From: Klebsormidium nitens | Taxonomy: Eukaryota; Plantae; Klebsormidiophyceae | NCBI GenBank assembly: GCA_000708835.1 | Contig: DF236968.1 | Coordinates: 310,001-374,000, forward strand | DNA length: 64,000 bases | Direction: 5' to 3' | Shown: positions 526-41,202 of the stretch, in pieces | Layout of the letters: every line of letters begins with the position of its first letter | Position numbering within the stretch: position 1 is the stretch's first letter | Position numbers and translations under genes: made by a program | Notes under the pieces: generated by a model | What the model was told of the DNA's origin: nothing | What the model saw: the letters and a program-made list of their open reading frames with translations, nothing else | Databases searched by the model: none

Positions 526-3500
526 GCCCGGTTCTACCAATCCTACAGCGGCTACAACGACGAGCTCCTGTGGGCGGCCACGTGGCTGCACCGCGCGTCG
601 GGCGACGGTACGTACCTTGACTACGTGGTTAACAACCAGGGACCGCTGAACGCGGCCGGCTCCGCGACGGAGTTCAGCTGGGACAGCAAAACCGCCGGCG
701 CCGACATTCTGCTCGCGCGCCAAGCGCTCAGCTGCGGGCAGACAAACGAGCTGTACACGCATATACGTATGGCGGCGGAAACGGTGAGGGGCCTAGAGAG
801 TGCGGTGATATTCTCCGGTTGGTGCTCGATTCGTATGATTTGGCGCGTGGGTTTCAGGTTCTCGCTATGCTTGATCGAAGAAGCACGGGGTCCGCCTTTT
901 GAACGCTAAGCTTCGGTTTGCAAAGGGAAGCAACAGAGGAAAGCAAAAGAAGCGAGGGTGTCGTTTGGGCTACCATTCGCATCCGTTCTTCGATTACCTT
1001 TTCTGGAAAACACAATATTGCCGTTCAGCATGGTTGCAGAATTCATTGCCGTCGTCTCTTGGCTTCTCGCTGAGGTCATGAAGGTCTTTGCACTTAATGA
1101 CGGCACGACCTCCATCCTACCATGGTAGCTTACCCCAGATTCTCAACGGCATCCTACCTCTGCTGGTTTGATAATCTCTCCACTGTTCCTCTTGTGCTAC
1201 TTGATATGCCAGGTGCAAAAGGCCTGACCTTCTTCCTATTAGGAAACTTCCCGCAGCGCTGGCGACAGCAGGGTTCTTATTGCTGACGTCACGATCGTCT
1301 TTGCAGTTCGCTTGCTACTACGTGAATCGACTAGTGTTCACCACCGCCAGACGGGCTGGCCTATATCATTGTTGAGTTCTTCACGATGCTCTTGATGACG
1401 TCAATTCCCTTGCCGACTTCATAATCTCCTTTGCAGTTCGTGTGCTACTTCGTCAACAAGCAGGTGCCCACCACGCCAAACGGCCTGGGCTATTGCCAGG
1501 ACCCCACCCTGACATCGGCTCCGACGTAAGCATCTACCTCCTTGCTGACGTCATGATTCTTGTGCAGTACGTGTGCTACTACGTCAACCGCCAAGTGCCC
1601 ACCACGCCAGACGGCCTGGCGTATATTCGGGACGGGTCAAACATGCAGTACTCCAACAACGCCGCGTTCTTGTCCATAGTCTACAGCGACTATCTCTCCG
1701 CGGCGGGGCAAAGCCTGACGTGTAACAACAACGGCGGAGGAACGGTGACGTACTCTCCCGCTCAGGTATGTGACGGCACGTTTTCAGTGCTTTTCTTTTT
1801 GATTCAGAAAGCCAGTTTCTTGAATAAGCGGTTCCGTCGATGATTTAAGACGACCATCTCTTCCGTGGCGGGGCAAAGCCTGACGTCTACCGTCGACGGT
1901 GGGTAAACGGTGACATACTGCCCCGCTCAGGTGCGCGACGTCCCGTGCTGTTGCTTGTCTGAGTGCTTTTTTCGCAGACTAGGTACCGCTATCTTAAGCT
2001 GGGACTTGAAGCAGCACATTTCAAGTCATGTGACGTCATGAAGAAAAATCAACGAGCCCACCATCGGGGCCAACTCTCATTCGCTGTGGTAGATTTTGGA
2101 GTCGGCTCGACCCCGTCTGCTATTGAAAATCTGCACTCTGGATCCGCTTTCTGGTGAAATTTTGGGGCCGCGTCAGAATGTTTCCTCGCAGGAATTCTCT
2201 CCTTCTACGAAAGGAATGAAAGCACCCCTGACCGCGTCGAAGTTCGTAACGGCCTTGGTCATCTGTTTCTTGTGCGAATGGCTACCTGATTCTCGATTCT
2301 GAAACCAGTGATAACCAATCATTCCGGTGTCTTTATCAAGGCCAGCTTGTCCCTCAGTCTAACAAATGATCATTTCCCGCCCCCAACCGTTTTTCGGTTT
2401 CCAAACGCTCAGACCCGACCGCTTGTCCCGAGCAGATCGTTACCTGGGCGCGCACTCAGATTGACTACGTGCTCGGCGGTAACGCGGCCGGTCGGAGCTA
2501 CATGGTGGGCTTTGGCAGCAACTACCCGACGCGTGTGCACCACCGGGGGGCGTCGGTTCCTTCTCCCCCCCCTAACTACTCCTGTGGAGAAGGCTTCCAG
2601 TTCTATCATACGAACAACTCTGACCCGTGAGTCGTGCTTCTTGCTCTATACAACAGAAGCGCGTTGCTTTTTGAGCAAATGAGAAACGGAAAGTCGTCCT
2701 TTGAAAGTTTTGAATGTTTGTAAGGCTCAGGATCTTTTAAACGGTGGTGAAACTGAGGCGTGTAGAGAAAGGAGAAAAAAGGAGGATGGAGATGTGAGGC
2801 TCTACCTTAGACAAAACTAGTTTGGCAGTCCCCTCCGATGTGAAAATGGTTTTCGTTTACCCGCAAGCTAGTCTTGCTGCCTCGAATGTGCACGAGGAGC
2901 AGTGAATTGGCTTCGCCAATACTTGACGACGTCCCTGGAAATAAACAAATCCTCTTCGCCTTCGTGTTTCGAGCTTCTGCAAATCAGTTTGTTTGACATA
3001 AACCGGCGATCAACGAGAAGATAGCTGTTAAGAGGCGGTGGCACTCGTTTTTACCGTCATCTGACAACCTCTTTCTGAACCTACAAGTGTTTCTCGTTCT
3101 CGAGAAACAGTAAGGGTGCGCGGCGACCGAAAAGCTGCAAAAAGCTTTCCAGATTTCTTAGCCAATCGGAGGGCTTTTCAGATCCACGTAGCAGACTAAG
3201 GTAAATACCAGAGGAGGTGTATGGCTTGAACAGTACCGTACCTTTTAAATATCGGTACTACGAAGGCAAGACGGGACGCCAAGTAGGTTTTCGGTCGACG
3301 CGCAACCTAAGAACATAACCGGTCTGATATGTGCTGTTGAAATGGATGTTTTGACCACTCTAAACCTCATCCCTATTCCCTCCAGCCACGTCATCACCGG
3401 GGCAATCGTGGGCGGCCCCTTCCAAGACGGAAGCTACGCCAACATCCGCGACGCCCGTGATGGGATTGAGGGTTACAAGCAATCGGAGCCGACCACGTAT

Positions 3501-5343
3501 ATAAACGCGGGCTACATGGGCGCGCTCGCGCGCCTTATCCGCGGGACCTCGGGGGTAGAGCCCGGGTGCACAGCTGTCACTGTGGGGGATCCCTCTCCGA
3601 CTACCCCAGAACCGACCACCCCTTCCCCGACCACTCCCGCCCCGACCACTCCTCCCCCGACCACCCCCACCCCGGTTACTCCTAACCCGACTACTCCGAA
3701 CCCGACCACTTCCGCCCCGGTTACTCCCAACCCAACAAGTCCCGCTCCGATAACACCTGCCCCGACCACTCCCTCTCCGACAAGTCCTGCCCCGACCGCT
3801 TCCGCTCCAGTGACACCTTCCCCAACCACCTCAGCACCAGTCACTCCTACCCCGACCACTTTTGCCCCGACCACTCCTTCTCCGACAAGTCCTGCCCCGA
3901 CCACTTCCGCTCCAATAACGCCTTCTCCAACCACTTCAGCCCCAGTCACTCCCGCCCCGACCACTTCTGCCCCGACCACTCCCCCCCCAATTACTCCGTC
4001 ACCCACTTTGTCTGCCCCGATCACTCTTGCTCCGACCGCCCAAACGCCAATCACACCTTCTCCGACCGCCCAAATGCCGATCACTCCTTCTCCGACCGCC
4101 CCACCTCCGACTAGTCCTTCTCCGACCAGCGCCGGGCCTTGCCCCGGGCCCACCGTTTACCCGGCGGGGGGTGTCTGCGACTCGGCCTCGGCGACTCCCA
4201 ACCAGGTTAGATTAAACTTCGCTGCATAAAGTAGCTGGAAAAGCCGACCTGCCAAAGCCTACTGTGCTTTGCAGGTAAAGCATACCACAATTGGAATAGG
4301 AAACTTTCTTCTTGCTGCCCGGACGCTGCAGGGGTCGGGTTCACGGAGCTTACCCATCATTCGGAGAAAGGTGCGGGGACTTTGTTGGGAGCGAAGCTCC
4401 ATTGAAATTCCGCCTTTCTACGCGTCGACACGAAAGTGGTGAAGATATTTGCCAGCCATTCAAATGAAGGGGGACGTTCCGCAAAGCGTCAGCAACAATC
4501 CCTTGGTGACACAATGACGATGAGAGTAGTCGCATACGAAGCCCGTCGTTGCAGCATCATTTGCCATCACCCAGATTCTGTGCTGGAGTATCCTGCCGCT
4601 AAACTTCACCGTCCGGCGTTACGGGTTACACAACGTCTCCTTACACGAGAATTTGCAACTCTCAGCAGATCGACCCTGAATCACCTGTATGCATTCCATT
4701 TCCGTTCTCCTCACCGTTTCCGTTTCCGTTTCTCCCAGTGCTATTCCGCCGACGGCTCCTTCTACGTCTGCTGCTTGGGGAACTGCCCCAGCACCCCCGG
4801 CACCCGCCCCTTCTGCGCCGACCCCCCCCCCGGAGACTGTTTCCCGACCCTCCCTCCAACTCTTGGGCAAACCCCCCCACCTAAGATCGATTCGCCGACT
4901 CCCGCGCCAACCGCCCCGACTCCTTTTACCCTTGCGCCAGTCGCACCGATTCCTGCCCCCGTCTCGGCTACCCCGGGCTGCCCTACGGTGCGATCGGCGG
5001 GTGGAGTTTGCGATCCGATGTCACAGATGCCAAACCAGGTGGGCTCGTTTGCCTTTCCCAGAGCGGGTCTCGCTTTATGCTGCAACGTTGGTTTGGCGAT
5101 ACGAACGGCGCCTTTCTGAACTTCTAACAAAAAGCCCGCCCCCGATCGCAAGCACTACAAGTTGGACGAATCGTTACGAATCGTTACGTATCGTCACCTA
5201 CTCTTGCCTAAGCTGATGTCACCTATTTGTTTTTCCAGTGCTACAGCGCCGACGGCAGCAGCTTCATCTGCTGCCCCGGTTCCTGCTCGAGCGCCCCCAG
5301 CGCCGTTCCAACGTGCGCGTCCGTCCTCCCCGGCTGCCCATAA
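526..5343 (+). CDS. Glycoside hydrolase family 9 endo-1,4-beta-glucanase (5' part outside window) with Pro/Thr linker and two C-terminal Cys-rich modules
   Basis: Phase-consistent exons: 526-783 (FYQSYSGYNDELLWAATWLHRA...FSWDSK), 1568-1765 (TPDGLAY...NMQYSNNAAFL), 2436-2626 (QIDYVLG...SYMVGFG..YPTRVHHRGAS), 3386-4205 (GAIVGGP...YKQSEPTTYINA + linker), 4739-5038, 5239-5343 (TAA). These are GH9 hallmark motifs including HHRGAS and the catalytic-acid EP motif. Confidence 0.93.
1270..1567 (+). repeat. Tandem degenerate copies of the acceptor and 5' part of GH9 exon 1568-1765
   Basis: TTGCAG|TTCGCTTGCTACTACGTGAATCG at 1301-, TTGCAG|TTCGTGTGCTACTTCGTCAACAAGCAGGTGCCCACCACGCCAAACGGCCTG at 1431-, versus the real GTGCAG|TACGTGTGCTACTACGTCAACCGCCAAGTGCCCACCACGCCAGACGGCCTG at 1562-. 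Each is preceded by TGACGTCA. Confidence 0.85.
1852..1940 (+). repeat. Degenerate copy of the 3' end and donor of GH9 exon 1568-1765
   Basis: GGCGGGGCAAAGCCTGACGT...ACGGTGACATACTGCCCCGCTCAG|GTGCGCGACG mirrors 1703-1775. The copy has TAA at 1904-1906 in the homologous frame. Confidence 0.85.
3595..4135 (+). repeat. Coding 15-nt / 5-aa periodic Pro/Thr/Ser linker (PTTPx / PVTPx / TSAP)
   Basis: ORF 3342..4229 reads PTTPEPTTPSPTTPAPTTPPPTTPTPVTPNPTTPNPTTSAP..., about 180 aa. Confidence 0.9.
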
Positions 5344-6518
5344 GTCCGCCGGCGGAAGCGGAACCGTATTCCGCTGCTCCCAAACGGCGGCTGCTGACAT
5401 CACAAAAGAGGACTCGCGCGGAGGTTCCGTGAGGGGTGACGGATTCCCCAGGAATAGAGAAAACTGCGAGTTGATAACCTTATTCATTGCCCAGAGATGC
5501 GTCGGAATCCGTTGAGCGGAATTGGGATGGTAACGACGGACGGAACTGCTCCTAGCGTACATGTTCTGCGTGGAAAGCTCGCGACAACCAGGTCTACAGG
5601 TCTACAAACATCATTGCACAGTCTTTGGTTACGATTTGCTTACGGTGGGGTTCATTGCCCCGAGTCATTGACTTGAACTTTGAGTCTAGAGTTGGGTCAT
5701 CGTAGCACAGCGCAAAAAGCAGACTCCGAACATGGTTATTCCTCGTCAAGTAGATCTTGATTCGCATGGCAAAAGTCAGGAAATTGTCCGGTGAGGTATT
5801 CGAACTCATCCGCGTAAAGAAAACAGACTCGTTAAGATACTAGACGCCGCGCCGTACTGTACGTTTTGCTACAGAACGGTATCGCGAAATTCAAGGAGCC
5901 AATGTCTGCCTTTAGGCGACCGGTTTTGAAACCAACTGCACTCGAAGGACAGTGTAGGAAAAGTACTGACAGACATGTCACACAGTCTAAGGTATCCTTG
6001 GTCATTCTTTTCAAGTTGTTTCTGATTGCACGATGGGTAGTCTGTTTTTCTCCAACACGGCAGAAACAGCGAGTTCCAAGGCACTAGATCCGATACCCCA
6101 CGCTCCGAGACAAGTCTAACAAATCAGAGGCACTTGCAAGCGTGCGGTCATACTAGTTGCGCCCATTCTTGGAGGTCTGATTTAGGAACTAGAATGGGGA
6201 ACATGTACGTGTCAAAAAATTCATGTTCCGCTTCGAGATGCAGATTGCTCAATTGGATCGCCTCCTTCATGCGATGCGTCTCCATACGATTTTTCTGGAG
6301 CACATGCTGGAGTGTTCTGGACTCTGTTCCGTTAGCAAGAATCAGTCAACACCAAATCTCTACTCAATCCGATAAAAAACAGTCGTTTATTTGGGACGCA
6401 ACAGGCACATCGTATCTGCAACCTGCCACTTCTATGACAAGATATGGGGCTCCAACGTTGACTAGTTGTTTTGCGTTCAATGGCGTGTAGTCTTCGTCCA
6501 AGCCCGTAGTCGCGTCTC

Positions 6519-9500: not shown

Positions 9501-10925
9501 CAGTCGAAGCGCGAATCTGAGCTGAGTGTCGCTTGATCGTGTGGCCGGGAGGATCGCCTCCGTAAAGGAAGTCGCGCGAGCGCACGCTCGTTCGCTAGCC
9601 GACGCGTACCTTTCAATTGCAGGGAATACTGGCTGCTAATCATGCTGTTCACCAGAATTTGAGGTTATTCGGTAACTCAACGGACATTAACCCGTTCCAA
9701 TGCTGGTTACCACTGCCCACGTCTGGTTGTTGGACACATAACTACTTTTCAACCAGCCCATAAGCGGACCAGAACCGTCTGTGGTTAAAAGACAGGACTT
9801 CCTGTGAAGCCGCGGGCATGGCCAGCTTCTTTTACCCGAAGAAAGAGACGGACAAAAGCAGAATGGACCACAACGGCATGCGTTGGCAAGGGATTCCGGA
9901 AGCCGTTGATCCACTCGAAAATTGATAAACGGGGTACTCATGAAGTGACGTGACTAGGGCGACTTATAGTACCCGCATCCTGGTTGATAAGGTCCGCGCT
10001 CGCATTAGTTTGTTGCGAAAAGCCAGAAATGGGGATCCGCCTTTCCGGATCAGTGGAGGAGAGCGCAGTATGAATGCATCTGACGAAAAAGAATCAGGAC
10101 CTACATAGGCGTGCACTTACAAATAGGTTTCAGAGCACTTAAAATCAGCAGTTACAAGATGAAGCTAACCAGATCGAACCATAGTCCATTGGCGAGACTC
10201 AAGAAAGTGCTACGAACATGGCCTGGGCCTACCTCTTCAGCTATCCAAACGAAACGTACTTAAGCCCACCGTGATAAAGAACTTCTTTCAGACCTTGCGA
10301 AAAACGTTCGTTCACACAGCTGCCTCGACTTTGCAGACTGCCCCAATGCACCATCTTTCATTCTTCAGAAACACTTCAGAATCCTCCCAACAAGAGTAAA
10401 GGCCTACAAGTCAATCATCTCAGCAAATCATACAACCTTATTTTGGCCATCAAGGGTCTTCAAAGCAGCACTTCCTCTATAAGAACATCAACATTGTCTG
10501 TATCAGAGACGTCGTTGATCAAAACACGAAACCAAGTGCACTTACTCGTCATCTGCCTCGTTTCCCTCTTCTTCTTCTTCTTCCACGTCAGCGCTATCGT
10601 CATCAGCTTCCTCCCAGCTGTGCGACGGGCTCTCTGCATCGTCCCCCCAGCGAACTTTCCAGACATCAGGCCCCTCTTTCATTGCGGCATTCATAAGCCG
10701 GGTAGTTCCATTTAGAATCTTCTGAATTCCAACAATGGAATGCTCCCGTTTGCTCATCGTGACCCAGGTTATCCGGTAGAGGGCGCCATGGAAATAGAGC
10801 GAGTACGCAGCCCAGAATGACCAGAATAGAAAGAGAAAGATGAGGCAGTACCGGCGGTTGAACGCTGGTGAGCGGAAGCCAGGGCGGTTCTTCGGAGAGT
10901 CCATCTTGAGGGGTGTGCGCGCCAA
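6519..10925 (-). CDS. Type II membrane PAPS-dependent sulfotransferase-like protein (carbohydrate sulfotransferase / HS2ST-like, Sulfotransfer_2 type)
   Basis: Exons 10925-10546 (Met, single TM CLIFLFLFWSFWAAYSLYF, acidic stem), 8617-8357 (FLLRIQKAASST, 5'-PSB-like), 7879-~7501/7457 (ISGHFSYG; TTLRHPVSRVVSWW, 3'-PB-like), ~6983-6519 (ALRNLRNFALVFLAE...LNSWDAMLYEKA). The first three junctions are phase-consistent. The last acceptor is unresolved. Confidence 0.8.
7347..7417. repeat. Dispersed ~70-nt intronic element, copy 1 (copy 2 at 49815-49885, inverted)
   Basis: GACGGGTGGGGTTAGTTTGGGGGTTTAAGGTGGGTACGGGTGCGGAGCGGGTCATTTTGTGGGTTAGG aligns by eye with the reverse complement of 49815-49885 (GACGGGTAGGGTTAGTTTGGAAGTTAGGGTGGGTATGGGTGCGGAGCAGGCAGGTTTGTGGGTTTAAG). 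Confidence 0.8.
8555..9248. repeat. Tandem duplication spanning a sulfotransferase splice acceptor, with an insertion in the second copy
   Basis: 8555-8619 is repeated at 8786-8850, and ~8652-8790 is repeated at ~9126-9248. About 270 nt of unrelated sequence separates the two parts of copy 2. Confidence 0.85.
8860..9125. mobile_element. Possible non-autonomous foldback/MITE-like insertion
   Basis: It interrupts a duplicated unit and contains a perfect 12-bp inverted repeat, CCAGATCCGAAC (9048-9059) / GTTCGGATCTGG (9069-9080), extendable with one mismatch, plus several related CCGAAC/GTTCGG words. Terminal inverted repeats and target-site duplication were not identified. Confidence 0.35.
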
Positions 10926-11009
10926 GTGAACGGAGAGCAGATAGGATAAGGACCTAATTCAAAGTTGTCCGCCAAAGACCTCAAATTCGAGATCTACAGG
11001 CTTGTTGTT

Positions 11010-11145
11010 GAAACTGCTGGTCACGTCAAGCGGCAGAGCAAGATACGATTTCCAGTAACAATAAGGAGAAGCTTGCTTTGGAAACTGCTGGTCACATCAA
11101 GCGGCGAAGCAAGATGGAATATCCAGTAAACGATAAGGAGAAGGG
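11010..11145. repeat. Two ~61-nt tandem direct repeats upstream of the sulfotransferase ATG (probable 5'UTR intron)
   Basis: GAAACTGCTGGTCACGTCAAGCGGCAGAGCAAGATACGATTTCCAGTAACAATAAGGAGAAG followed by GAAACTGCTGGTCACATCAAGCGGCGAAGCAAGATGGAATATCCAGTAAACGATAAGGAGAAG. Confidence 0.85.
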
Positions 11146-12185
11146 ACAAAAGACGCTTTAATACCGGCCGTCTGCAACAGCTGGTGACGTCACGTGCTCC
11201 GAGGTTTTCACCCCTGGTAAGATTGCGCCAGCAAAGGCAAACAGAAAACGTTCGTGAAGACCAACGGGGCTCAACAGAGGCACTAATCCCTTGCTTCTCC
11301 GACCGAGAGAAATCAAGCACGTAACCGCTAAGCTCTGCCACTGCCAATGGGTTCTTTATATGAGTCTAGTCTGCCTTGTCAGAAAACGAGACGCGACTCA
11401 GAAGCTACCTCCCAAGAGCTTCGACGTGACAGAAATGGTCAGCAAACTGACAGTAAATGAGTGTCGCCATGATTAGGTTGGCACGCAAGGGCCAATACAT
11501 CGGTTGCGAATGACGACCATCCTGCGCACGAGTAGATCATCAATCGACGACTGTGATTTAAAACTGGAGACTACATTAGTTGATCACAAGTGGTCACATC
11601 GGGACGCCCACTCAAGTACCCTCTCCTAACTAGAAGAGGGAGGCGCCTGATTCATGTTTAAGGAGTTTCCACGGGCACAGGCAAACGAAGGCAGAAACTC
11701 ATGCGGCCCCGCGGGTGGTGTGAGTTCGGGTCAGGTCAGAATAGGGGTTACCGTTACTGTGATTAGACCGCTTTCGGACCAAGCTAAGACATGCCAGATG
11801 CACGGACCAATCCTCTTGTCCAGACTTTGTCCAATAGGAAAGAAGTCCGAGCTGGACAATTGAGCCGTCTCATGGACATAGTCCAAATTCTGTTTAGTGA
11901 GTATCCAAACCCCTACACGGATCTCCAGCATTTCGTGACTTCGCCTAAGGGTCCATGTCTAGACTCTGTCTACAAAGTGCCTGACGATATTCAAAGCCTG
12001 TTGAATAATACCCCAACTGCCTCTGAACAGCCTTCTGACACACATCGGACAAGTGCTAATTAATCTCTTACAGTGTGCAAATGTAAACCTCGCTCGACTG
12101 CGTCTGATATGTACACCAATGCAATTGACAATGAGAGTACAGTTTTCTTCTCTTTTACAAGCTACATTGGCACGTTTGATCGACT

Positions 12186-14170
12186 TCAAACGTTTGGAGG
12201 GGACGGAATTTCGGGAGCGCCTAGTTCTGGTGAAAGCCTTGGTTGGAAGTGCTGCAAGTGGAGCATCAAACGAAAGATCAAATGCCGGCGGTAATCTATT
12301 CTCATTGCGCGAAGTCCTTTCTTTCGTCTGGATTTCCACATGCGAGCCGGTTTGGCAGGCATATAATCACTCATTTGTTCCGTTACAAAATTTCCTCGTT
12401 ATGGCGGCCTCTCTACGGATTCATGCACTTTTCAAACCTCTAAAGCAATGTTAATCAAGCATTTAGCTCCGTTGACAAGCTGTCATAAACGGATCTTCGA
12501 TCTTCCATCAAGTATTCAAGTTTACCCAACTTCTTTTTTTTCAAATTTTGACAACCGGACTCGCGAAACGGATTTCGCGCTTTCTCATAAAGCGAGGCAA
12601 GCACGACCCTTCTGCAAGCCATTCAAACCCCACCGAAGCTTTTCGAGAGAATTTGGGATAGAGAAGGGTGTCCAGTAATGTCCTGATATTGCGTGCGCGC
12701 AGCTCGCGGGTTTCCTTTCCGCTGATCGGAACTCCTAGTACCTCGTTTGGGCTGATACTATTCAACGGGGGAGTGTTAGACCACATGCCACCTTTGCGGG
12801 TCTACACCGAACCGCCCCCAGATACCTCTCTGAATTCGGTGAATGAATCTCGTTGAGACCAGAAGTTGCAACAACATGCATCCAGCGGACGTCTAATATG
12901 AGGGTAAGATTCCTAGTTGCATTTTCTACAATACTGTGAATCCAAGGGGCGTACGGAACAGACCGTCTAAGAGCCTAGAAAATGCGCCGTACTTGAATCA
13001 GGGACGCTTACCGAAGCCAGTGACGTCAGGAGGGATCCCCTGGCCAGGTCTGCCATCGTCAGGATCGCCTCCGCCAGCCGGGGATGCTCGCGGGCCTTGT
13101 GAACCTGGACGGCGACCATCTCGTGGCTGCGGAGGAAGGGGGACCAGTCGGCGGCGTCGGCTCCTACAGGGCCCGAGCGACAAACGACTTTGCACCGAGT
13201 AGAAAGAGAGGAAATGACGAAGAAACAGGGGGCAGAGCAACAAGGAGGGAAGAGAATCGTTGATGGCTGTTGTAAACACTTGGCGGCGTCGGCTCGTTCA
13301 GGGCCCGAGCGAAGGAGAGGTGATGATGCAGTGAGTTGTGACAAAGTTGACGGGAAGCGATGGGAGAGAAGGAGCGAAGATAAGGGGGAAAATGCAGTAT
13401 CAAGGTAGAAGGAATGGAGAAGCGAGCGCGACGGAGGGAGAGGAAAGCGATGGCAGCGAGGTGGGAGGGGAAAGACTGAATTCATGTCAGAAGGTGAGTC
13501 ATACGGGTGAAGTATTGTGCACTGGCCACGAGTTGTATTTTGATGAAAATTTGCAAAACAAGATATGTCAGTCAATAACTTCTGGTCAGGATAGTTGCAT
13601 CTTTTTCTCGTCCACCAAAGCAGATGGGTCACGCATTCAAGCGAGAGGTAATCTGCTTCGATTGTCGGGAGTGCCTTATCCCTATCGAAACCATTTCAAA
13701 CTGCCATGAAACTGAGTTTCCCCAACAAAAGGCCGCGAATCTTGTGGGTTTTCTGGAAAACCCATCTTCCGGAAGGAAGAAACCAAGGGAGATCCGAACA
13801 TGCACATGAACGGTCAACGTTCAAACCAGAAAAGAGGTCTAGGTGACCAAGCAGAAACCGTTCTCACTAAAACATTCGAAAGCCATGCATGTCGCCCTAC
13901 ATTCAGGAACGCACCCAGCTTGGATATCATCCTTTTAGAGAGATCAAAAGTCCTCTTGTCTTCTCAACTTTTACAAGGACATGCGTTACCTTCTTCTTTC
14001 CTCAGAGCGCAGCAAAGCAATTTCCGGGGGGTCCAAGCAGGAGCAACGGCGGCCCCCCCATCGCCACGGAGAGGGCTGACGTCATACTTGCGAACTTGGA
14101 GGTATGCGGTGAGGAAGAGGCAGCCGCCAAAAAGCAAGACCGTGAGCGTTCTTATCTCAACTTCCAGCAT
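12186..14170 (-). CDS. Uncharacterised small type II membrane protein (~190 aa)
   Basis: Phase-consistent exons 14170-13990 (Met + TM LTVLLFGGCLFLTAYL), 13163-13012, 12801-12634 and probably 12251-12186 (last exon less sure). Canonical AG/GT at each junction. No family motif recognised. Confidence 0.6.
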
Positions 14171-15925: not shown

Positions 15926-18900
15926 ATGGAGGATGAGAGCATTGGAGACCAGCTGGATGAGGCGTCAGGTTGGCTTGAAGACGGTGACTGCAAAGCCGAT
16001 GAACAAGGCCAGTGGATCTACAGGAAAGATGCCGCTTCGGCTTCTCCGAGTTTGCAGATCAAGTATGCTTTCAAGATGCATGCAAACCTGCCGACGCATC
16101 AAGTTTCTGAAAGATGCTTCCACATAGTGAATAAGAGTCGGCCAGATGTCGGCAGAATGTAGCATGCGCCGCGCCGACTGACATCTAGAAAAGACTTGAA
16201 GTTGAGGAGGTATGGCAGATACTGAAATCCCCTTTCAACGCCCTGATTCTTCTTCAAGTGTACTGTCAAAAGCCATCAAGCTCCAAACCCTAATTTCGGA
16301 ACCCTAATCTGAGCTGGCAGCTTTACCACCAGGGACGCCTTCCATGGGCCCCTTTACATGGCTCAGTCTCCCTCTGCCGCTCTCTCAGGCATTGCTTCTG
16401 CTGCAGCCACCCTCGTTGGCCGCAGCATTGCCCTTTCAAATCACACTGATACTCAGCAGCTTTCTCCTCGAGGTGGAATTGTCAGAACCCTGATTTCAAG
16501 CCAAAGGCTTGACATAAGCTCTAGCAGTCTTACCACAAGCTCCCGCAATCCTATCATAGGTGCAAGCATCCAAAGCTTGCCTTGTCTTCAGGCTGACATT
16601 GCAAGTTGGGGGGCGAGCGAGACTGGGGCTCTCTGTGAGGTTCTGTACCAGTGCAAGGAAGCAGAACGGCGACTGAGTCTCTCAGAGGAGAGCGTGATCA
16701 CTGAGAGGAGCCGAATCGGTTCCATAGCAATTGCCGACAGTCTAGAAAGAGCACGTTCTATTCCATCTCAACCAAAAGGGGCCATTTTTGGTCACAGCGC
16801 CCAGCCACAAATGGGCTCTCCACCAGGCATCAAGGGTTTGGAGACTGAGAGAAGGCACTCAGGCGGGTCTCAAGCATTCTCACAACCTAGACGAACGCCA
16901 GATGCTTCCAGCGCAGCCGCTTCTTTACAGCAGCGCCTGTCCGCAGGACATCCAAATGTTTCACGGCCCTCACAGCAAGGGGGGGCTGCAGTAGGTTCGG
17001 ATCAGATGCAAGGGGGGGTGGAAAAACGCCGTTCCAGCTCCGAGGCAGTCCTCAGAGTGCTGCGACAGTGTCAGGAGCTAGAAGAGGACCTTGCAGCTAG
17101 GAACTGGACGCAAGGGGGGGGCGAGAGTGGCCGTTCACAAACGGGGGTGTCAGAGGGGGAGTTTGAAAGAAACAGGGGGGGCAGGATGAGTGGAGGAGGT
17201 GGGGGGGGCCGGGGTGGCATTGCAACTTTCCAGAGGGCGGGGCAGGACGAGAGCGAATGGAATGCTGGTAAGACGAGCTTCCCTTAGCGACGGTGCGCAT
17301 TCCCCTTCCCAGAGCTGTTTGTGACGCACATGTTCCATTGTCTGGTAATCCAGCTCAGCATCGGGGCTCACTGATAGGGGTGATCCCCTGGTTTGTTGGT
17401 CTTTTGTTTCTCAGTCCGTACTTAGCTTCCCAGCTTTGGGGCAAGTTATTCCTGAGAATAGGGCCTTCTTCTCCAAAGGTGCGCACCAATTAAGCAAAGT
17501 TCTTGATTATCCTTTACATTCATGAGATTCAAACTATGAAAGGTGACCGCCAATGAAAGCACGTCTTCTTGCCCCCCTTATCTGCTTTTGCACTTTCAGT
17601 CAGTCCTCCACCCAGATGCTGCCGTTCAAGACCAAAGCCTTCTCTCAACGTTCTTGTTGACTGCGACCATATTGCCTGCCCTTCCAGACCCCTATCAATC
17701 CATAAGGAGCTTCAGAAGCTTTACGGCGAAAACTCCCGCGGTGTTGCTCAAAAAGGACAAGCCCTTTGCTTACTTAGAGAAGCTGAAGTTGCACAATGCT
17801 GCAATTGCTGCAGCCCCCCTGCTTGTTTCAGTGGAAGAGGCCCAACCTTAAATGCTAGGAGCTATCTCTTTGTATTCTCCCTTGACGCCGGGTTTATTTA
17901 CCAGCTTTCTGACCAGTGCTTCAGCTTCTTTTCCAGCGGTCGTTGTCATCTTTCTTCTCTGCGGTCCTTGGCTTTCCGCACTTACACACAGATACCGTGT
18001 TGAGTGATCGTAGTATTCACTGTTGGCAGTTGGTAATACTTTGTTTTCAGCTCCTAGCTCCTCTCAAAAACAACCGTGCACTTCAAGAAGAAAGCTCTGC
18101 TCACACCCTTGCAGGTGAACCGCCGGGGTCTAGGCCTCATTCCGAGCGCTCCTTCTTCATGCGCGAACGGCACTCCAAGCACACGTTGTCATCAATGGGA
18201 CCGAGCGACTCCCACCCCCAGTCGTTGTCTGCAATACGGGAGACTAGTGAAGACGTACAAAACAGTGTCCGACATTCGGACAGCCGCTTCAGAAATCAGA
18301 GCGAAAGTGTGCATCCGCGGACGTCCGGCAATGACGGGGCTGCGGAGAGAGACGGCCGCAGACAGCCGAGCTGGTTCGAAGAGGAGTCAGGAGGCCCAAG
18401 AAGGGCGTCCGAAAGAGCGTCCGCAGGGCCCGAAAGAACGTCCGCAAAACGAGGAATAACGTCCGCAAGTAACTCGGTTGTAGAGGATGCAAAGCCGAGC
18501 TGGCTCGAAGAAGAGGAAGGGATGTCAGAGGCGCCGGAAAGGGCGTCCGAAAGAGCGTCCGCAGGGGCAGAAAGAACGTCAGAGCGGATCATAGCTACGG
18601 AGGAGAAAGAGCACAGGCAGTTGAGCTGGCTCGAGGGCAGAGAAGCGGCGTCCGAAGGGCAGGGGAGGCCGTCCAAAGGAGCGTCCGCAGGCTCGGGAAG
18701 AGCGTCCGCAGGGTCAGAAAGATTGTCCTCAAGGAAGTCGGTCTCCGAGGAGAAAGAGCACCGGGAGCTGAGCTGGCTGGATGACGAAGAAGGGGCGGTT
18801 GAAGGGCAGAGGAGGCCGTCCGAACGAGCGTCCGAAAGAGCGTCTAAACTAGTGTCCGGACGGGCGCCCAAAAGAAGTTCCCATGTAGAGACAGAGCACA

Positions 18901-21900
18901 GGAGGCAGAGCTGGCTGGGGGAGGAAGACTGGGCGCCCGGAACGGCTTCTCTAGCGTCCGAAAAGGCGTCCGAAAAAGCGTCCGCAAGAGTGTCTGGAAA
19001 GTCGTCCGGAAGGAAGTCCGAGGAAGAAACAGAGCACAGGAGGCAGAGCTGGCTGGCGGAGGCAGGCTGGGCGCCCGGAGCGGCTTCCCGAGCGTCCGAA
19101 ATAGCGTCCGTAGAAGCGACGAACGAAGCGTCCGCTAGAGCGTCTGCTGGGGACTGTTTCAGAAGCCGGTCAGGATCTCGAAACACCGTGGAGCGACTCC
19201 GGTTTGCTGGCGCTGAAAGTGGGGAAGAACTACCAGATCAACCTCGATCCAAGAAGCAGCAGTCAACCGATGCTCGATCAACGAGAGTTCACGAAAACCG
19301 GACATCTCAGGGCGCCAACACAAGTGGTCGGACGTCTGCGAAAAGCGCAGAGCGGCAGAGTGGGAATGAGCACCTCGAAGAAGAGCCGGGGGGGAGACAG
19401 GGGGGTGGCGCGCGCGCGTTTGAAGACGGAGTCGAAGTGTTGCGGCTTGTGGAAGGGGAGCCTTCGTGGACGAGCGCGGAGCCTTCCGGGTTTCTCGGGC
19501 GGGGGGAGGTGGAGCGGCCGAGCGGAAGCTCTAGAGGTGCGTCTGGTGGGGTAACGGCAAATGTGCCCGAGGACTTTGGCGAGGTCGCCAATAAGAGGGG
19601 GGTAGAGGAACCGGTAACGGAGAAGCGAGACAGGCCGGAACGCGGACCGGAACCCGATGCAGGGGAAACGGAAGACCGGAAGAGCAGTTTTGGGGGGTCG
19701 ACAATAAGGGCATTTTTTGATGAGGACACGTGGCACGACCGCACTGGTCCTCCTAGCGTGCGCGAGTCTGGGGGCAGATCCGCAGCTAACAGCCGACCGG
19801 CGTCCCGACTTTCTGAAGCTGGATCGTTCCAATCCGCTCGGGCGTCCGAACGGAACGAAACGGAAACCGGATTGGCTGTGCCGAGAGCGTCTCGAAATAC
19901 AGTCAGCGCAGCACGTGAGTCTGCGAGTCGCACCTTCGAGTTCCCGACGAGGGGATCATTTTCAAAGAACCCTGGAGCGAAAGGGTCACGGTCGCGGTTC
20001 GCTTCGGCGGAGAGAGGGGCGGAACGGAACGTTGCAGCGGAAAGGCCGGCGAGCATGCGGACGAGTCTGAGCGGGCGGAATGGTCCCAACGGAAGAGATA
20101 GCCCTGTGAACGTTCCGGAAGGAAAAATTCTCGATGGAAGGAACAGTACGGGTGGGCGTAACAATCTGGAAGGAAGGAGCAGTACGGGTGGACGGAACAG
20201 CATGGGCGGAAAAGCGAGTGCGGACGGACGGAAATCTTTGGAGGGGCGGAACGATCAGAACGGACGGAACAGTCCTGACGGACGGGACGATTTGGATGGA
20301 GGGGAAAACCTGGACGGCTGGAAGTACCCGGTGGAACAGGAAGTGCGGGGCAGCCTGAGCGGACAGACCGCTTCGGAGAGGCGGAACGAGCGGAACGGAT
20401 CGCGTGCTGCAACAAATTCGTACTCCGAGAAGCGGGCTACGAGCGCAGGTGTGCCTGCACCTGCCACGAGAGAGCGCCACGTGGCAGGGCGAGCGCCGCC
20501 AGACCGTGCGCGAGCGAGCGGCGTGCAGTCTGGAAAGGGGGCAGACTTTGATTGCTCGAATAACGACCACCCAGGACAGAGGGCTTCGGAAGACGTTCCC
20601 CAAAACAGCGCGCGAGTGCAGGTTTCGGAGAGAGGGCAAAGCAGATCGGGGCAGAGAGTCGAGATGCAAAATACGGATGGAGAGAAGTGGGCAGATAAGC
20701 GAGTGACGGGAGTACCGCAGAGAAGCACAGTGCGGGTAAACATGGGCGAGAAATATCAGAAAGGCGCCCACGTGATTCGAATCAACGGCTGGGAAGCAAC
20801 AGCGGATCGCGAAAACCGTTCCCGAAACGCACCGAGCGATTGTTACTTTCACAAGGAGCGCATTGAGGGCCGTTCTCAAGATGAAGAGAGGGACTTCGAC
20901 GAAATGTCGTCGGAGGATGGCCGTTCCGAGTACGACACTGGCAGCTGGCGAGCTCCGATTGGTCGGGAAGGTGTTCATGGGGAGCAATCGGGGTGGGGTT
21001 CCGCGACACGTGGCTTGGTGCGTACCGCTCGGTTGAAGCACCCGGGGGCCGAGATAACGGAGAAACAGCGGTACGAAAAGGAAATGGAGGCGCTGAGCGA
21101 ACTGGTCAGAGAGTATGAAGCGAACGCGGTTCAGAAGCACAGACGCGGTATAGGGTCGGGCGCGAGGAGGGGCCAGTTCTTACTGGAGCCGGACACCGGT
21201 TCTACTTTGCTGGGCACTCCGGTCTCGGAGCTCTCCCTCGACCTGCCCACTCCGCCGGAGCTCCGGAAGAAGCGGGAAGCTCTAGGTGGGCTCCCTGGAA
21301 AGCAGACCGGGGGCCAGCCCGGGAAGGGCGCGGGAAGTTTAAAGAAGTCTCTTGCGCAAACGCGGCAAGCGGCGAAAGAGGCGATAAAATCGGTGCGCGC
21401 GGTCTACTGCGCGAGCGGCTGCGCGACGCAGCAGGTGCGCGAGGGAGAGCGCGTGTGGAAGCAGCAGCTGGTGAGAATACGCGCCTGGACGGTGGCAACA
21501 CACCCTGTCTGCTCGTGTCTTGACTTGCGGGAAGCGGCAGGGTTTGGCAGAATCCCAAGACTTGAGTCCTTGATTGTCTGGAATTGTTGTCTTGACGGTT
21601 TTGCGCACTCAAATTACCAACCGACGGAACGTGTTTTTCTGACCAACGAAAATCAAGAATCTCGACGCCCGTTCCTTCAATAACAAAATCAAGCACTTCC
21701 TTTCTTCAGCTTCACGAGAACATACCAAAGAAAGCACTGCTTACTGAGGGGCCTTCATCCGCCTCATTGAGTGGCCAGGTCTGATGTTCGATGTTTCTCG
21801 CGAATTCCAGTTACCCGACCTTCGCTTACCCAACCTACTAGTTTCCGCTGTGCTCCAAACGTCAAGATTCTCCGACTGGATCCTGATCATACTCGCCTTG

Positions 21901-31375: not shown

Positions 31376-34300
31376 ATGGCCGAGGGGTGCGGCTGCGAGA
31401 AGGACTCGTGCCAGATCAGCATCCAGAATCCGCTTGCGGCGGTTGGCACTCAGGAGCCCCTTTACGAGGCGACCGAGCTGCGAACGGGGGCGGCCAATCC
31501 CCACTGGTCCCGCCGGCTTATACAACCATGCTTGCCCCAAAAGGTGGTCGCAGAAATGGTGGGAACTTTTGCGATCGTCTTCGCAGGTGAGGGGTTCGGT
31601 GAGAAAGTTAGGGTTTAGGGTTGTTGGGGTTGGTGTCGTGATGCAAGCGTAGGGCTTTGGATTGTGTGCAGGTGAAAGCAGACTCGCTCTTTGTGTGTTG
31701 AGAAGTCTGGCTGCGCCGCGCGATTTTTGAGATTTTAGCAAATGAGGATCCTGAGGTGGCATAAGAGTCTAGGCTTGGCAGCCTGATGGCGGATTGCTTA
31801 ACAAAAAGTTATATGCTGAGCTATTACCATTTGATGCTCTGCCTTTGGCTTTTAGAAGACGTGCACCAAAACAGTGGTGGGCAAGGGACGCTTTCTTGAA
31901 TTACGTAGTCGTTATGGAGGCGTATGCTATCGTAGACGCTGCCACCATTCGTGTGTCTGTTTGAAAAAAGCGTGCACCAAGAGCGATGCTTTGTGCAAAC
32001 ATGCTCAAAGTTAAAAAGGTTCTCGCCGCACCTTAATCTGTGTTCGCAACAGACAGTCCCTTGTAGGACAAGCAAGGAACGCACATTTCATTGCATTTTT
32101 TGACTCTGACGGGATTTTCTCACTTCTCCAGGCTGTGGGGCAGTGGTGGTTAACGCCCGCTCCGACGGCGCGCTCGGTCACGTGGGCATCGCCGCTACTT
32201 TTGGGCTCGTAGTCATGGTTATGATCTATGCAGTGGGCCACATTTCGGGCGCCCACTTCAACCCCGCAGTCACGCTGGCGTTCGCGTGCGGGCGGCACTT
32301 CAGCTGGAAAATGGTGAGCTCGGGGCTCGTCTTGTTCTGCAATTGAGTGATCTAGTGTTTGTCACCGTCAAGACCGAAAAAGGGGGATTCTAGTTTACCT
32401 TTACTGGAGTTGGGCCACAGTTCAAGTGTCCACTTTGACCCCGCAGTCACGGTGGCGTTTGCGTGCGGGCGGCACTTATGTTAAGAATTTGTGAGCTTGG
32501 ACTTTATACATCTAAGACTTTTGCAATTAAGGGTGTTATTTTCGGTTTCTCCAAAGGGGGGGCCTTTAGGTCTTCCCAAAGAGTGGAATCCGGGTGCACC
32601 CCCTAAAGTAAAGTTAGCCGTGAAGGTGGTCTTTAAGCAGGCTATAGCACAGAATCTATGAAGACAGTCGAGTACGGGTCCCATGACGAGTCAGCATTCA
32701 CTATCTTGCAGTCCCACCATGTACCTCCCGTATTGGGCCGTCATGGCATCCCCTCTTCGCAAATGGATCTCAGTGGGCAGACCGTCGCGCACCTCGCTTT
32801 CATCTTTGCAATTTCCTTCTTTCCCCCAATCTTGACTTGCTTCACCTTCTGTTGCGTCGCTTCAAAATCAAGGCTTATAATTTCCAAGCAATGAGACAGT
32901 CACTGATTCCAATGCCCCAGCGATAAGCAGCGATTGCCTTTTCCCCAGGTCCCTTTCTACTGGGCCGCCCAATTCCTGTCTGCCACCGCCGGCGCAGCCT
33001 TGATTCGCGGGATTTTGGGCTCGGAAAAAGCGCTCGGGGCAACACTACCGAGCGGGACCGATTGGGAGTCGCTCCTGCTAGAGTTCGTCCTCACGTTCTT
33101 CCTCATGTTCGTGATTGCCGCCGTTGCAACAGACACGAGGGCAGTCGGAACAATGGCCGGAATTGCGGTATGCTTAGCTCATCTAGTGCTCTCCCTCTCG
33201 ATGAGTGCTGATATCAGTCCCTCCAGTACGTTCCTGAGGCATGCTTCAAAATATGCGTCATGCTTATGTGGTCCCAAACAATCTTGGTATGCTGCGTGGA
33301 CGGTCTGTTTTCATCAATTGTTGCTTGTTCTTGTTAATTCTTTCAAGGGTTGTTATATGAGGAACGCTCCCCTTCGAGAATTTCCAAGCGTTGTTTCAAC
33401 TGTGGTCGAAGCTCGAGAGTCCATGTTTTGTTCTATGGCGCCGCCAGTGAAAATCAGCATAGTGGGCGGAGAAAACGGCACTCGTTTTTCCTCATTCCTC
33501 ATTGCTTCAATCCTAGTAGTTCTTGTCGCATACGTCGACGATTGAATTGATGATGCCTTCATCATACGGACCTGTTTGGAATCGTTTGCGTGTTTCGATT
33601 AGCCACGAAAATATTCCTCATTGTGATGATACCCAACCCTTGTCTCAGTAGCCTGAATCTGGTGCGCTTCGCTCTCCTTTGTAAATCCATATTGTCGTCC
33701 GGTTTTATGCTGGAGACTGACTCGACAAGTTTGCCAAAACTCCTACCAATCTTCACTTAGTTGAGAGTGGTCTGCTCTTACCGTTATTCACTCAGTCAAC
33801 TCCCATGCCGACAGATTGGCGGGACGGTTGCTCTGGATGCCTTGTTCGGAGGCCCTGTCAGCGGCGCCTCGATGAACCCAGCCAGGTCGCTGGGCCCTGC
33901 GCTCATAGCTCTTGTAAGCAAACAGGGCCTTTTCCTCAAAAGTTCCTTCTGGCGAATTGCGGAGCCGCCGCCCCTTGCTGTTGGATTTTCTTTTACGCGT
34001 TGGCTTGTTTGAGGAAAGAGCTTTTTGTGAGGACATGAGACTCATTTCAGTAAAGCGTCACAGCGTTTGGCATTGAAGAGAGCAGAATGCGAGAAGTTAG
34101 GAAAGGGATTGTAAAGAGCGAGTCGGACTGGGTTACAAGTGACTGGCAAACTAGACTTCCCGCAACTCCATCCAAAACGAGTGGGAAAGGTTGGGTTTCG
34201 AGTGATAGCGGCAAAAGCTTAATCACGACCGGGTAACGGGTGTTGATGGGATGTAAAACCGTTTGCGAAGTGACGTCATTGCTTGTCAGCCCGTTGTGCA

Positions 34301-38310: not shown

Positions 38311-39486
38311 CATATGTGACTGCCCTATTATGAGAAACATGCACTTGAGTTTTTAGGGTTTGCAAACGCAGTTAGTTTGAGTGGGTTTGGCCAGCCGTAA
38401 GTACTAAGAACAGAGGAAAGCTGGCGTTTCGGCTGCAGTTGGCCCCACAATCTGGGTCTAAACCCTTGAGGCTTGAGAAAAAGAGGAGAGCTTGGCAATC
38501 ATCAGCCGCAATGCAATTTTGTCGTGACCAGTTCCCCTTGAAGTTGCAACTTCAAGCAGCTCTGTATTGTCGAGAAAAGAGATCCGTCTCCTCCTGAGCA
38601 GCAGCAGAGTGAAGAAGTCTTGCGGATTAGGTGCGGATTGATGCGGGGAAGGTCCAGGAAGGGTGCTACCGCCGCCCTGGTTGCTGTTGTCCTTTTAATC
38701 GGACAGGTGAGCTGCATAGGAGTGTTGCGTGGTCAGCTTGGGATTGCCGTCTCATGGCGCATCAACTTGGAACAATGCTAGCGCGCCAATCAGCTTCATG
38801 ATGCCGCCCCATGATTCAGGAAAGGGGCTTTGAATTTCATATTTGATTGATAGTTGTACGACGCTAGCAGCGAACAAGCTGTAGCCAAGCTTCTGCACTC
38901 CGCTTTGGCAATGCTTGCGGTAATGGTCTGTCAGCCACATTCATCGGGTATTTTCTGCACAATCTCTCCAAAAATTGCTCTTTGAAGCCACGCATATGAT
39001 GCTTTCAATGTGTCGGTACTGTCTGTATCTACGAGCTTGGGCCGAGATTGCGGACATGTTGCACCTAACAACTGGACTGGTGATGTTTTTGCAGGTCGAC
39101 TTCTTGCAAACAGCTGAAACTGAGCTGTCATTGAGAGTCTGGTCAAATATAGGCTCGTTGTGGACTTTGAAGCGGCGCCAACAATTGTTCTGAGAAGACC
39201 ATCCGCTTTTTCAATCCGGAGGCGCTAGTTAGCTTTACCAAGGGGTTTTGAAAGCAGAAGGCTTCTTCAATCAGATGTAGTTCGCTGGTCCTGCGCAACG
39301 CCGGAAAACTAAGATAGATTGTTGGAAGTCGGCATCTTGTCGGCAGTGTTCCTTAGTATTGTTCGTTTCTATTCCTAGAAGTGGTACACTAGTGCACCTT
39401 ACCCCTAGTCATTCAGGGTTTTGGGTGGATAAGAACCAAAGCACTCGCCTAGGAAGGACCGCCGGAGCTTGGCTCAAGACGCAGCA

Positions 39487-41202
39487 ATGATTGCTCTCCG
39501 GCAGGCCTCTTCTCGGGGCCTTTTCACACCGCAATTGTGGCGTCCTGCATGGGCGTCAGTGGTGAACCCCGACGCAGCGGCCGCCTTGGTTGCACCTGAC
39601 CCTGCAGCTTCCGAAACCCCCTCACAGTCAACAGAAACCCCGGCCGCTGCGCCTGTCCTCGACTCTCTGCAAAGCAAACCCTCCCGACCACTGCCCTCCC
39701 GACACATGGCCTCCTTCCTTAGCTCGTCCTTCTCAGCCCCCCACCATAGGTCGGTAGCGCACTTCCACTGTACAGCGTACGCTCGAGCAGAGGCCGCCGA
39801 GCAGCGGACGCCGCCGAGCGAACGGGTAGAGCGCATCGCGAACGACATTGTGCAGTTGAACCTTTTAGAGGTGGCGGACCTCTCGGAGCTGCTTCGGGCC
39901 AAGCTAAAGATTACGGAGATGCCGATGGCTGCGGGCATGATGGGGGGCGGAGGGGGTGCAGCGGGGCCCTCGGGGGGCGCCGCCGCGGCGGCACCGGAGG
40001 AAGCAAAGGAGGAGAAGTCGGTGTTTGATGTGAAACTGGAGAAGTTTGACGCGCCGAACAAGATCAAGATTATCAAGGAGGTGGGTGATGGAAGCTTCTC
40101 TTAAAAACCATCAAAATGAGTTTTGGAACTTGCAGTCATGTTGGCTGATTAGCTGGATGCTTCGTCTGTTCGAATTGGTGGGGTAATCTCTGATAGGCAC
40201 AGTCCTGCTTCGGTCTTTGGATTCGGTCTGGGAAGCAGTCAGACTATTGTCGATGTATGGGCAATCGTAATGTTGCAGAATCAACCTTGCCGATTTGGCA
40301 ACAAGTTGAGGTCCCCTGCGCGCAGAATAATGCAATCAAAGACCTGCGCTCAGTGAATCTTCTAGGGCGCTGATTTGAACTTTCTTTTCCAGTTCGCAAG
40401 TCTTCAATTCTCTTAGCGACAGAAATGGTGGCCCCTCTGAGTATCCAGAGTGGACTGCTTGGAGCTTTTTCAAAGGATTGTGCTCATTTCAAAGAGGTGC
40501 CACTTTGTTGCAAGAGCCAGCATATGCGCACAAGTGTCCGTATATACTATTTGTGCGTCCTGATCTTCTAACCCTGCCAATTGCGCATGGGCCCACCCTT
40601 CGTTTCACATCCTGGATCAGAATGGAGCTTTGCGCTGCTTGCACTAAGCTTCAAGCAGCAGGGAAATAGCTGTTGCCTCGGATGCTGGGAAGGGCTTTGT
40701 CCACCACTTTGCCAAGTGCTCTGCTATCCATCTCTTTGGCCGTAACCTCTGAGTTGCTCTCTGTTGCTTGGATCTGACTGGCATGCTCGAAAGCGTAAGC
40801 CCTGTCTCACCATGTAAGACTGTGCTAGCGTTGCCGGCTGCCCTGCAATGAAGGCAGTACTTCATGACCATTTTTCTTGCATCAGTGGCTTCTTCACGTG
40901 CCCAGGCCACATCAGCATGCCACAAAGAGGCCGGAGTTTCAAGAATTGAGCCTTTCCAAGTCGACCAGAATCTGAGCGGGACAGCTATGAGATCGTACGT
41001 TTCTCCCAGCTTTTCCTACTTTGTACCGATTTCTATCCGCATCTTTTGACAGGTACGGGGGATGACGAGCCTGGGGCTCAAGGAAGCGAAGGACCTGGTT
41101 GAGAAGGCGCCGGTCGTTATCAAGGCGGGTGTAAGTAAGGCGGAAGCAGAAGAGATCATCAAGAAGTTGCAAGCAGTTGGGGCCACGTCAAAGATGGAGT
41201 GA
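39487..41202 (+). CDS. rplL: Organellar (probably mitochondrial) ribosomal protein bL12 (L7/L12) with N-terminal targeting peptide
   Basis: Exon 39487-40080 ([16 protein letters not shown]; [24 protein letters not shown]) and exon 41053-41202 ([44 protein letters not shown]). The start codon choice is uncertain. Confidence 0.93.

Follow-up and report, generated by a model that had tools for sequence, protein, structure and literature searches.

The 3′ end of a gene for an endo-β-1,4-glucanase of glycoside hydrolase family 9 (GH9), located at the left edge of a 64-kb stretch of Klebsormidium nitens DNA (contig DF236968.1, positions 310,001 to 374,000; hereafter the window), was found to encode two tandem copies of a small cysteine-rich module, each split over two exons. 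The same module closes other K. nitens proteins, in none of which it has been named. Judging from the domain architecture, it may be a non-catalytic accessory module directed to the cell wall, probably through carbohydrate binding; we see about equal prospects for and against this role.

Two intron-split modules at the end of a GH9 gene

Window exons were handled one by one, and intact modules were studied through relatives with uninterrupted coding DNA. Translation of the open reading frame (ORF) at 3342-4229, together with a tandem-repeat search, revealed a linker of about 183 residues rich in Pro, Thr and Ser (3590-4139; + strand, as are all the features of this gene) and made up of 15-, 30-, 45- and 105-nucleotide repeats. 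The linker leads directly into the N-terminal half of module 1 (CPGPTVYPAGGVCDSASATPNQ; 4140-4205), which contains an extra outer Cys (C1) and the first Cys of the core, aligns with PVGGTCDPRSSTPNQ of the relatives and is matched by a hidden Markov model (HMM) of the family. The segment 4131-4205 translates to AGPCPGPTVYPAGGVCDSASATPNQ and is immediately followed by GTTAGA (…PNQ/GTTAGA, where the slash denotes the splice junction). Module 1 resumes after a phase-0 GT..AG intron (4206-4738), whose position is common to the K. nitens paralogues. The next exon (exon B, 4739-5038), preceded by ...CCCAG, spans exactly 100 codons and carries, in this order, the second half of module 1 (CYSADGSFYVCCLGNCPSTPGTRPFCADPPPGDC; 4739-4840, comprising CYSADGSFYVCC..C..C and the outer Cys C8), a Pro-rich spacer of 46 residues (4841-4978) and the first half of module 2 (CPTVRSAGGVCDPMSQMPNQ; 4979-5038), the latter recognised by translation, alignment and HMM match. 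It terminates at a second donor site (…PNQ/GTGGGC), from which another phase-0 GT..AG intron extends (5039-5238). The last exon, 5239-5343, is preceded by ...TTCCAG and translates to CYSADGSSFICCPGSCSSAPSAVPTCASVLPGCP and a stop codon; it supplies the C-terminal half of module 2 and one final Pro. A preliminary description of this region had the protein ending in …PGC, which has to be corrected to …VLPGCP-stop. The cysteine spacing given there, C-x(9-11)-C-x9-C-x9-CC-x3-C-x9-C-x(6-7)-C, is right for both copies by direct translation, and both phase-0 introns fall between Gln and Cys (NQ/CY).

The two splices from which the copies had been assembled, 4205 to 4739 and 5038 to 5239, are canonical GT..AG splices and in phase. 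Both copies were also matched by a profile (A2) constructed from nine uninterrupted environmental modules, without any window sequence. Against the six-frame translation of the 64-kb window, profile A2 matched the C-terminal halves of module 1 (E 5e-10) and module 2 (E 1e-10) and the two 15-residue N-terminal halves (E 0.008 and 0.09), and nothing else. Since the window copies are recognised by a profile derived from foreign sequences, the module is more than a chance pattern.

We considered the alternative that these exons are not coding or not spliced as proposed, and that the gene stops soon after 4205 (…PNQVRLNFAA-stop). Such a situation would fit the failure to recover an annotated protein with this GH9 C-terminus, either with HMMER among 1.84 billion cluster representatives or in word searches among proteins of 55-175 amino acids and of up to 820 amino acids; either the public gene model is without these exons, or the protein is hidden by its cluster representative or by the length limits of the word searches. 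However, both halves of both copies match the foreign profile, the splice sites are canonical and preserve the reading frame, and the window junctions coincide with the junction of annotated K. nitens paralogues. Moreover, the NQ-CF junction is contiguous on intron-free contigs of a relative 66% identical to one of these proteins, and the ratio of nonsynonymous to synonymous substitution rates (dN/dS) is <1. We regard the non-coding alternative as scarcely credible.

The proposal that the two copies result from a tandem domain duplication was strengthened by the same phase-0 intron, which both of them share with 10 of the 12 modules of their K. nitens paralogues. Between the window copies dN/dS is approximately 0.45 and dS approximately 0.8, so that the duplication must be old and has been kept in frame. 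Because of this divergence, a DNA-level repeat search across 4100-5400 did not detect the copies as a repeat.

The 5′ edge of the window falls inside the gene, whose 3′ two-thirds are covered. Searched exon by exon, four colinear exons up to the start of the linker matched the Pfam family Glyco_hydro_9 (PF00759) over profile positions 206-444, with matching stretches at 493-780, 1562-1767, 2469-2627 and 3387-4205, and no exon of the gene matched another family. The first (526-783; acceptor ...tgcag/GCC and donor ACG/gtgagg, as read from the sequence) matched positions 206-279 with an E of 1.7e-16, and the second (1568-1765; splice sites cag/TAC and CAG/gtatgt) matched positions 303-348. The third (2436-2626; E 1.3e-10, positions 363-402) includes SYMVGFGSNYPTRVHHR, and the fourth (exon 3386-4205, in its part 3386-3589; positions 404-444) brings the domain to its end with ...YKQSEPTTYINAG. 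We take SYMVGFGSNYPTRVHHR to be the GH9 His signature (PROSITE pattern) and YKQSEPTTYINA the catalytic-acid (Glu) motif. The closest solved structures for the catalytic exons are GH9 enzymes of the PDB (E ~1e-9, obtained with exon 526-783). The catalytic part thus belongs to GH9 by its profile, its His signature and its catalytic-Glu motif, and since the two motifs are intact, the visible part of the enzyme looks active. With these exons and the translated linker in place, the module does lie where it had been described, on a GH9 enzyme behind a Pro/Thr linker. A lone Cys at about 3566 (…GVEPGCTAVTVG…) lies past the GH9 domain and ahead of the linker, outside both modules.

A module family in Klebsormidium and related environmental sequences

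With exon B as the query, the HMMER search of cluster representatives returned five proteins, P0001-P0005. Three of them are true relatives (E 3e-8 to 4e-5): P0002 has two tandem modules, P0004 five and P0005 one. The other two were dropped, P0001 being a junk repeat translation and P0003 an animal galaxin-repeat protein (PF24748). Exon B searched alone gave nothing in Pfam, PDB sequences, the ESM Atlas or a word search among candidates of 55-175 amino acids. P0004 is the K. nitens protein KFL_001660180, and a word search seeded with it led to P0012, P0013, P0014, P0015 and P0016 (E 3e-17 to 1e-9). P0012, likewise from K. nitens, is a phosphodiester glycosidase of the NAGPA type (PF09992, E 4.5e-27) and ends in two modules; residues 322-469 of this protein, used in a word search among proteins of up to 820 amino acids, retrieved P0012 and P0004 and no longer architecture. 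In P0013 (KFL_000460100) two modules follow a domain of some 290 residues without a family match. This protein has an environmental counterpart, P0006, which is 66% identical to it, and the N-terminal domain of the pair found no match in Pfam, PDB or the ESM Atlas. In P0014 (KFL_004060070) a PT linker joins three modules to a Cys-rich N-terminal part. P0015 and P0016 represent two exons of one environmental eukaryotic gene, each with two modules. On the contig encoding P0005 (L002), inspection disclosed no recognisable partner exons.

About 23 modules were collected in all, from the window GH9, four other K. nitens proteins and a few environmental contigs; where they are in tandem, the runs comprise 2 to 5. 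The module had been described as sitting at the GH9 C-terminus; the position was verified, but the module is not specific to GH9, as it also occurs on the glycosidase P0012, on two proteins whose N-terminal domains were not recognised (P0013 and P0014) and as a five-copy protein. The module has spread among presumably secreted proteins, always in C-terminal position and usually behind a Pro-rich linker. To the extent that sequence comparisons can tell, the unnamed family is real and so far seen only in Klebsormidium and related environmental sequences. All four K. nitens homologues are annotated as hypothetical and leave the module unnamed; small modules split by introns escape six-frame and ORF-based annotation.

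Two of the homologues are neighbours in the K. nitens genome. In the interval 2399-14214 of contig DF237115.1 (L001), the P0012 gene (stop codon at 9901-9903) is followed 98 bp further on by the gene for the five-module protein P0004, whose annotated start lies just upstream of a C-terminal module half that is not preceded by an N-terminal half. The gene models of P0012 and P0004 may have to be revised; the module seems to have been amplified locally here. An environmental eukaryotic contig (L007, from Joint Genome Institute data set 3300060284; 10001-13312) carries four modules, two per exon, without the NQ/C intron. Some 1-2 kb downstream, ORFs on the strand of the modules have VWA-domain matches and may share a gene with them.

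An intron older than the spread of the module

In four K. nitens genes, 10 of the 12 modules are interrupted by a phase-0 intron at NQ/C[F], each with a GT donor and a CAG acceptor. The two remaining modules, the second and third of P0014, are without it, and module 2 has another intron, placed after CCSNP (L010, 6606-7411). This indicates that introns have been lost or have slid within the family. The same junction is contiguous on the environmental contigs L005, L006, L002 and L007. One of these, L005, encodes without interruption all 387 residues of a protein whose K. nitens counterpart gene spans 5.9 kb, which means that L005 derives either from a spliced transcript or from an intron-poor relative. 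The NQ/C intron is older than the spread of the module among the Klebsormidium genes.

Conserved residues and predicted fold

Alignment A4, in which the halves of split modules were entered as separate rows (32 rows in all), produced the consensus C-D-P-x4-P-N-Q-C-[FY]-[NSD]-A-x-G-x3-[VIL]-C-C-x-G-x-C-x3-P-G-x2-P-x-C. The conserved core therefore spans about 36 residues and includes six Cys, spaced C-x9-C-x9-CC-x3-C-x9-C; its motif is CDP..PNQC[FY]N. Besides these Cys, the invariant positions of A4 are Asn14, Gly21 and position 17, which is always aromatic, and Asp7, Pro8, Pro13 and Gln15 are found in most rows. The outer Cys pair, one residue 9-11 positions upstream of the core and the other 6-7 downstream, is confined to the two GH9 copies. 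Thus, the initial view of an eight-Cys module applies to both GH9 copies but not to the family, whose unit has six Cys. The two extra Cys are only ever found as a pair, in the GH9 copies and nowhere else in the family, and most simply they would form a fourth disulfide clamping both ends of the module; this pairing and all the other disulfides of the module are presumed from the sequence. The conserved aromatics that had been proposed reduce to one: the Phe or Tyr after the second core Cys (third of the eight) is invariant in A4, but the second position is often Ser, Gln or Ala. The module has been under purifying selection, dN/dS being about 0.25 between P0013 and P0006 in addition to the value of about 0.45 between the window copies.

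AlphaFold2 run on a nine-row alignment yielded a mean predicted local distance difference test score (pLDDT) of 56, and this model was discarded. With the 32-row alignment the mean pLDDT rose to 88.3 and 35 of 44 residues scored 90 or more. The model, made for the six-Cys module of a relative, shows a single β-hairpin (positions 14-17 and 24-27) surrounded by coil, and no helix. No fold could be assigned by Foldseek against PDB, by a wide VIA-align search or by a second look with VIA; with a query of 44 residues, these negatives are uninformative on the novelty of the fold. The top Foldseek rows were small inhibitor domains, pacifastin (7slt) and the Nicotiana T1 inhibitor (1ytp), at E 5-7 and probability 0.01, with template-modelling (TM) scores of 0.19-0.24 and root-mean-square deviations of 8-10 Å. 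They could be taken to hint at a domain resembling a protease inhibitor or an antimicrobial peptide, released from its carrier or displayed by it. Such matches are at noise level, however, and no motif resembling a reactive site is conserved, which makes an inhibitor-like function most improbable.

Possible role of the module

According to the reading that we favour, without granting it better than an even chance, the module is a non-catalytic wall-targeting device and probably binds carbohydrate. The linker, probably O-glycosylated, would carry two tandem three-disulfide β-hairpin modules; these would keep the catalytic domain close to its substrate by binding a polymer of the cell wall (cellulose or some other glycan), the presence of two copies adding avidity. 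The function would be analogous to that of CBM49 in land-plant class C GH9 enzymes or of CBM1 in fungal cellulases (CBM, carbohydrate-binding module). In favour of targeting, the modules occupy the C-terminus of a cellulase, with GH9 exons and signatures, behind a long Pro/Thr linker, and a second glycosidase family, represented by P0012 (NAGPA, PF09992), provides another carbohydrate-active partner. The N-terminal ends of P0012 and P0013 are hydrophobic and, judged by eye, resemble signal peptides; the window GH9 is presumably secreted as well. The copies are in tandem and under purifying selection. Finally, the one invariant aromatic of the hairpin has conserved polar residues around it (Asp7, Asn14, Gln15, Asn/Ser18).

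The conservation of these residues also bears on the possibility that the module is a structural cap, that is, a compact end-piece, resistant to proteases and devoid of a ligand, by which the extended glycosylated linker is stabilised or terminated. While the invariable location at the extreme C-terminus, after Pro-rich segments, is what a cap would require, the polar residues in question are of the surface type and have been maintained in long-diverged paralogues, and tandem repetition is hard to square with a mere cap. We find this explanation improbable.

Somewhat less improbable, yet still unlikely in our estimation, is that the module anchors or cross-links its carrier in the wall, by binding a wall protein or glycoprotein or through intermolecular disulfide exchange, and so retains secreted proteins in the matrix. 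This would account for modules on P0013 and P0014, which have no recognisable carbohydrate-active domain, and for the five-copy protein P0004, as well as for the paucity of conserved aromatics. On the other hand, every module has an even number of Cys (6 or 8), an argument for disulfides closed within the molecule, and the GH9 and NAGPA partners suit glycan targeting.

Carbohydrate-binding targeting must itself be weighed against a number of observations. The case for glycan binding is drawn from domain architecture. There is one invariant aromatic only; type A cellulose-binding modules normally carry a row of three. The partners P0013, P0014 and P0004 have no carbohydrate-active domain recognisable in Pfam, nor, for P0013, in PDB or the ESM Atlas. 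Neither sequence nor fold similarity to any known CBM emerged from Pfam, the PDB profile search, Foldseek or VIA-align, and the fold model represents the six-Cys module of a relative rather than a window copy. In addition, about 230 N-terminal residues, roughly a third of the enzyme and with it any signal peptide and the Asp pair of the active site, lie upstream of the window.

A further step would be to see in the module the founder of a new CBM family, its three-disulfide β-hairpin being a fold not met before and its range being restricted to Klebsormidiophyceae. An early-diverging streptophyte alga would then have an independently evolved counterpart of the CBM49-bearing class C GH9 enzymes, and would have reused the module on other secreted wall enzymes. 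This we hold to be a serious candidate, with chances somewhat short of even. CBM49 is carried by those GH9 cellulases of land plants that attack crystalline cellulose; for streptophyte algae, little is known of how wall hydrolases are targeted. The module, with its 36-55 residues, is a candidate that can be cloned, and at least two different glycosidases of this model alga carry it. Were it to bind a wall glycan, it would represent a new CBM family and could serve as a small probe of wall polymers in Klebsormidium; it would also point to convergence in the ways enzymes were targeted on the path to land plants.

Exon-edge echoes and other features of the window

The introns of the GH9 gene hold, within 1280-1633 and 1697-1946, decaying copies of the adjoining exon edge together with its splice site. 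An exon start, reading cag followed by T/TCGTGTGCTACTACGTCAAC…, is present in three copies with a spacing of about 130 nucleotides, and an exon end, …ACGTACTCTCCCGCTCAG followed by gt, has one copy 165 nucleotides downstream. A similar arrangement was seen in DF237115.1 (L001, 11075-11104), where a degenerate N-terminal module half with a GT donor (CDLTSAAPNQ/GTGAGC) lies inside an intron, about 190 nucleotides downstream of the real half; it is another exon-edge echo, within the module family itself. The sequence TGACGTCA occurs 13 times in the window against 1.05 expected, a count reached in 0 of 100 shuffles, and four of these copies fall in GH9 introns or in echo copies.

Elsewhere in the window, on the + strand, an open frame of 1255 codons (17916-21683; GC content 0.59-0.60) is rich in Ser, Glu, Arg and Ala, has a repeated '…(Q/P)SWL.EEE…' near its start and gave no Pfam match. 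An aquaporin (MIP) exon (32934-33545, +) and an exon of ribosomal protein L7/L12 type (39469-40104, +) are neighbours unrelated to the module.

Comparison with known families

The Pfam-A collection used here (2025 copy) includes models for CBM_1, CBM49, Chitin_bind_1, CBM_14 and X8. No module match was obtained with the intact-module proteins P0002, P0004 and P0005 at E<=10, or with P0012-P0015 at E<=1, and a PDB sequence-profile search with the family gave nothing below E 0.2. The early statement that the module matches neither CBM1 nor CBM49 nor another named family has therefore stood up, the Pfam, PDB profile and fold searches with intact-module relatives all being empty. Nor did full-text literature searches on Klebsormidium endoglucanases, binding modules and cysteine-rich proteins bring up any account of it. 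One might still suspect a very divergent member of a known family of small disulfide-rich binding domains (hevein/CBM18, CBM1 or knottin-like), given that domains of about 40 residues yield weak statistics everywhere and that VIA-align and Foldseek are known to miss such folds. We think this a poor prospect: even the permissive Pfam threshold produced no match, the PDB profile search returned only noise, and the Cys spacing is unlike, with three Cys before the CC doublet as opposed to two in hevein and with CBM1 having four Cys in all.

In size class and general build the module resembles CBM1 and CBM18, which are disulfide-stabilised domains of about 36-45 residues with short β-strands, often in tandem and attached through Pro/Thr/Ser linkers. 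CBM1 has about 36 residues, four Cys and three aromatics on a flat face; it was discarded as the identity of the module, which has six core Cys with a CC doublet, one invariant aromatic and no CBM_1 match in Pfam. Hevein/CBM18 domains have eight Cys and a CCS..G.CG motif. Their spacing is C-x8-C-x4-CC-x5-C-x6-C-x5-C-x3-C, and the motif is listed in Table 1 of PMC6032398. The module departs from it in having three Cys with x9 spacings before CC, where hevein has two, and matched hevein in neither Pfam nor fold searches. Pfam likewise returned no CBM_14 or X8 match, and CBM14 and CBM43/X8 were set aside.

The plant eight-cysteine motif of non-specific lipid transfer proteins (nsLTP) and hybrid Pro-rich proteins, C..C..CC..CxC..C..C, belongs to helical domains of about 80-90 residues. 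It was rejected as well: the module has no CxC, is under half that size, is predicted to form a β-hairpin without helix and has no Pfam match to this class. CBM49, a β-sandwich of about 100 residues without a cysteine framework, resembles the module in being a C-terminal, non-catalytic unit placed behind a linker on a streptophyte GH9, with presumably the same job. It has been described as unique to land-plant class C GH9 enzymes (PMC5977491). As an identity for the module it was excluded by the lack of a Pfam match and by the 36-55 residues and Cys-rich composition of the latter.

A precedent for the concept exists in volvocine algae. From architecture alone, Guerriero et al. (2018; PMC6032398) proposed 'novel cysteine-rich CBMs' at the ends of the GH9 cellulases of these algae, with binding left untested in that work. 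These unassigned Cys-rich C-terminal regions also follow Pro-rich linkers, but they are 100-250 residues long, with repeats of the W-x-C-x2-C type, no CC doublet and no PNQC (PMC6032398 supplement). The strings CCPG and NQC are absent from that supplement, and on reading the sequences the volvocine regions (Cr9B, Gp51466, Gp51468 and Vc2958622) were rejected as members of the family. Because the sequences differ, the concept has a volvocine precedent and the Klebsormidium module family does not.

The true homologues of the window copies are the K. nitens proteins P0004, P0012, P0013 and P0014, with which they share the motif CDP..PNQCFNA.G...CC.G.C...PG..P.C and, for the most part, the same phase-0 intron. 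They differ from the GH9 copies in having 6 instead of 8 Cys per module and other N-terminal domains. The module thus forms a new family within a known kind, that of small disulfide-rich accessory modules on secreted glycosidases.

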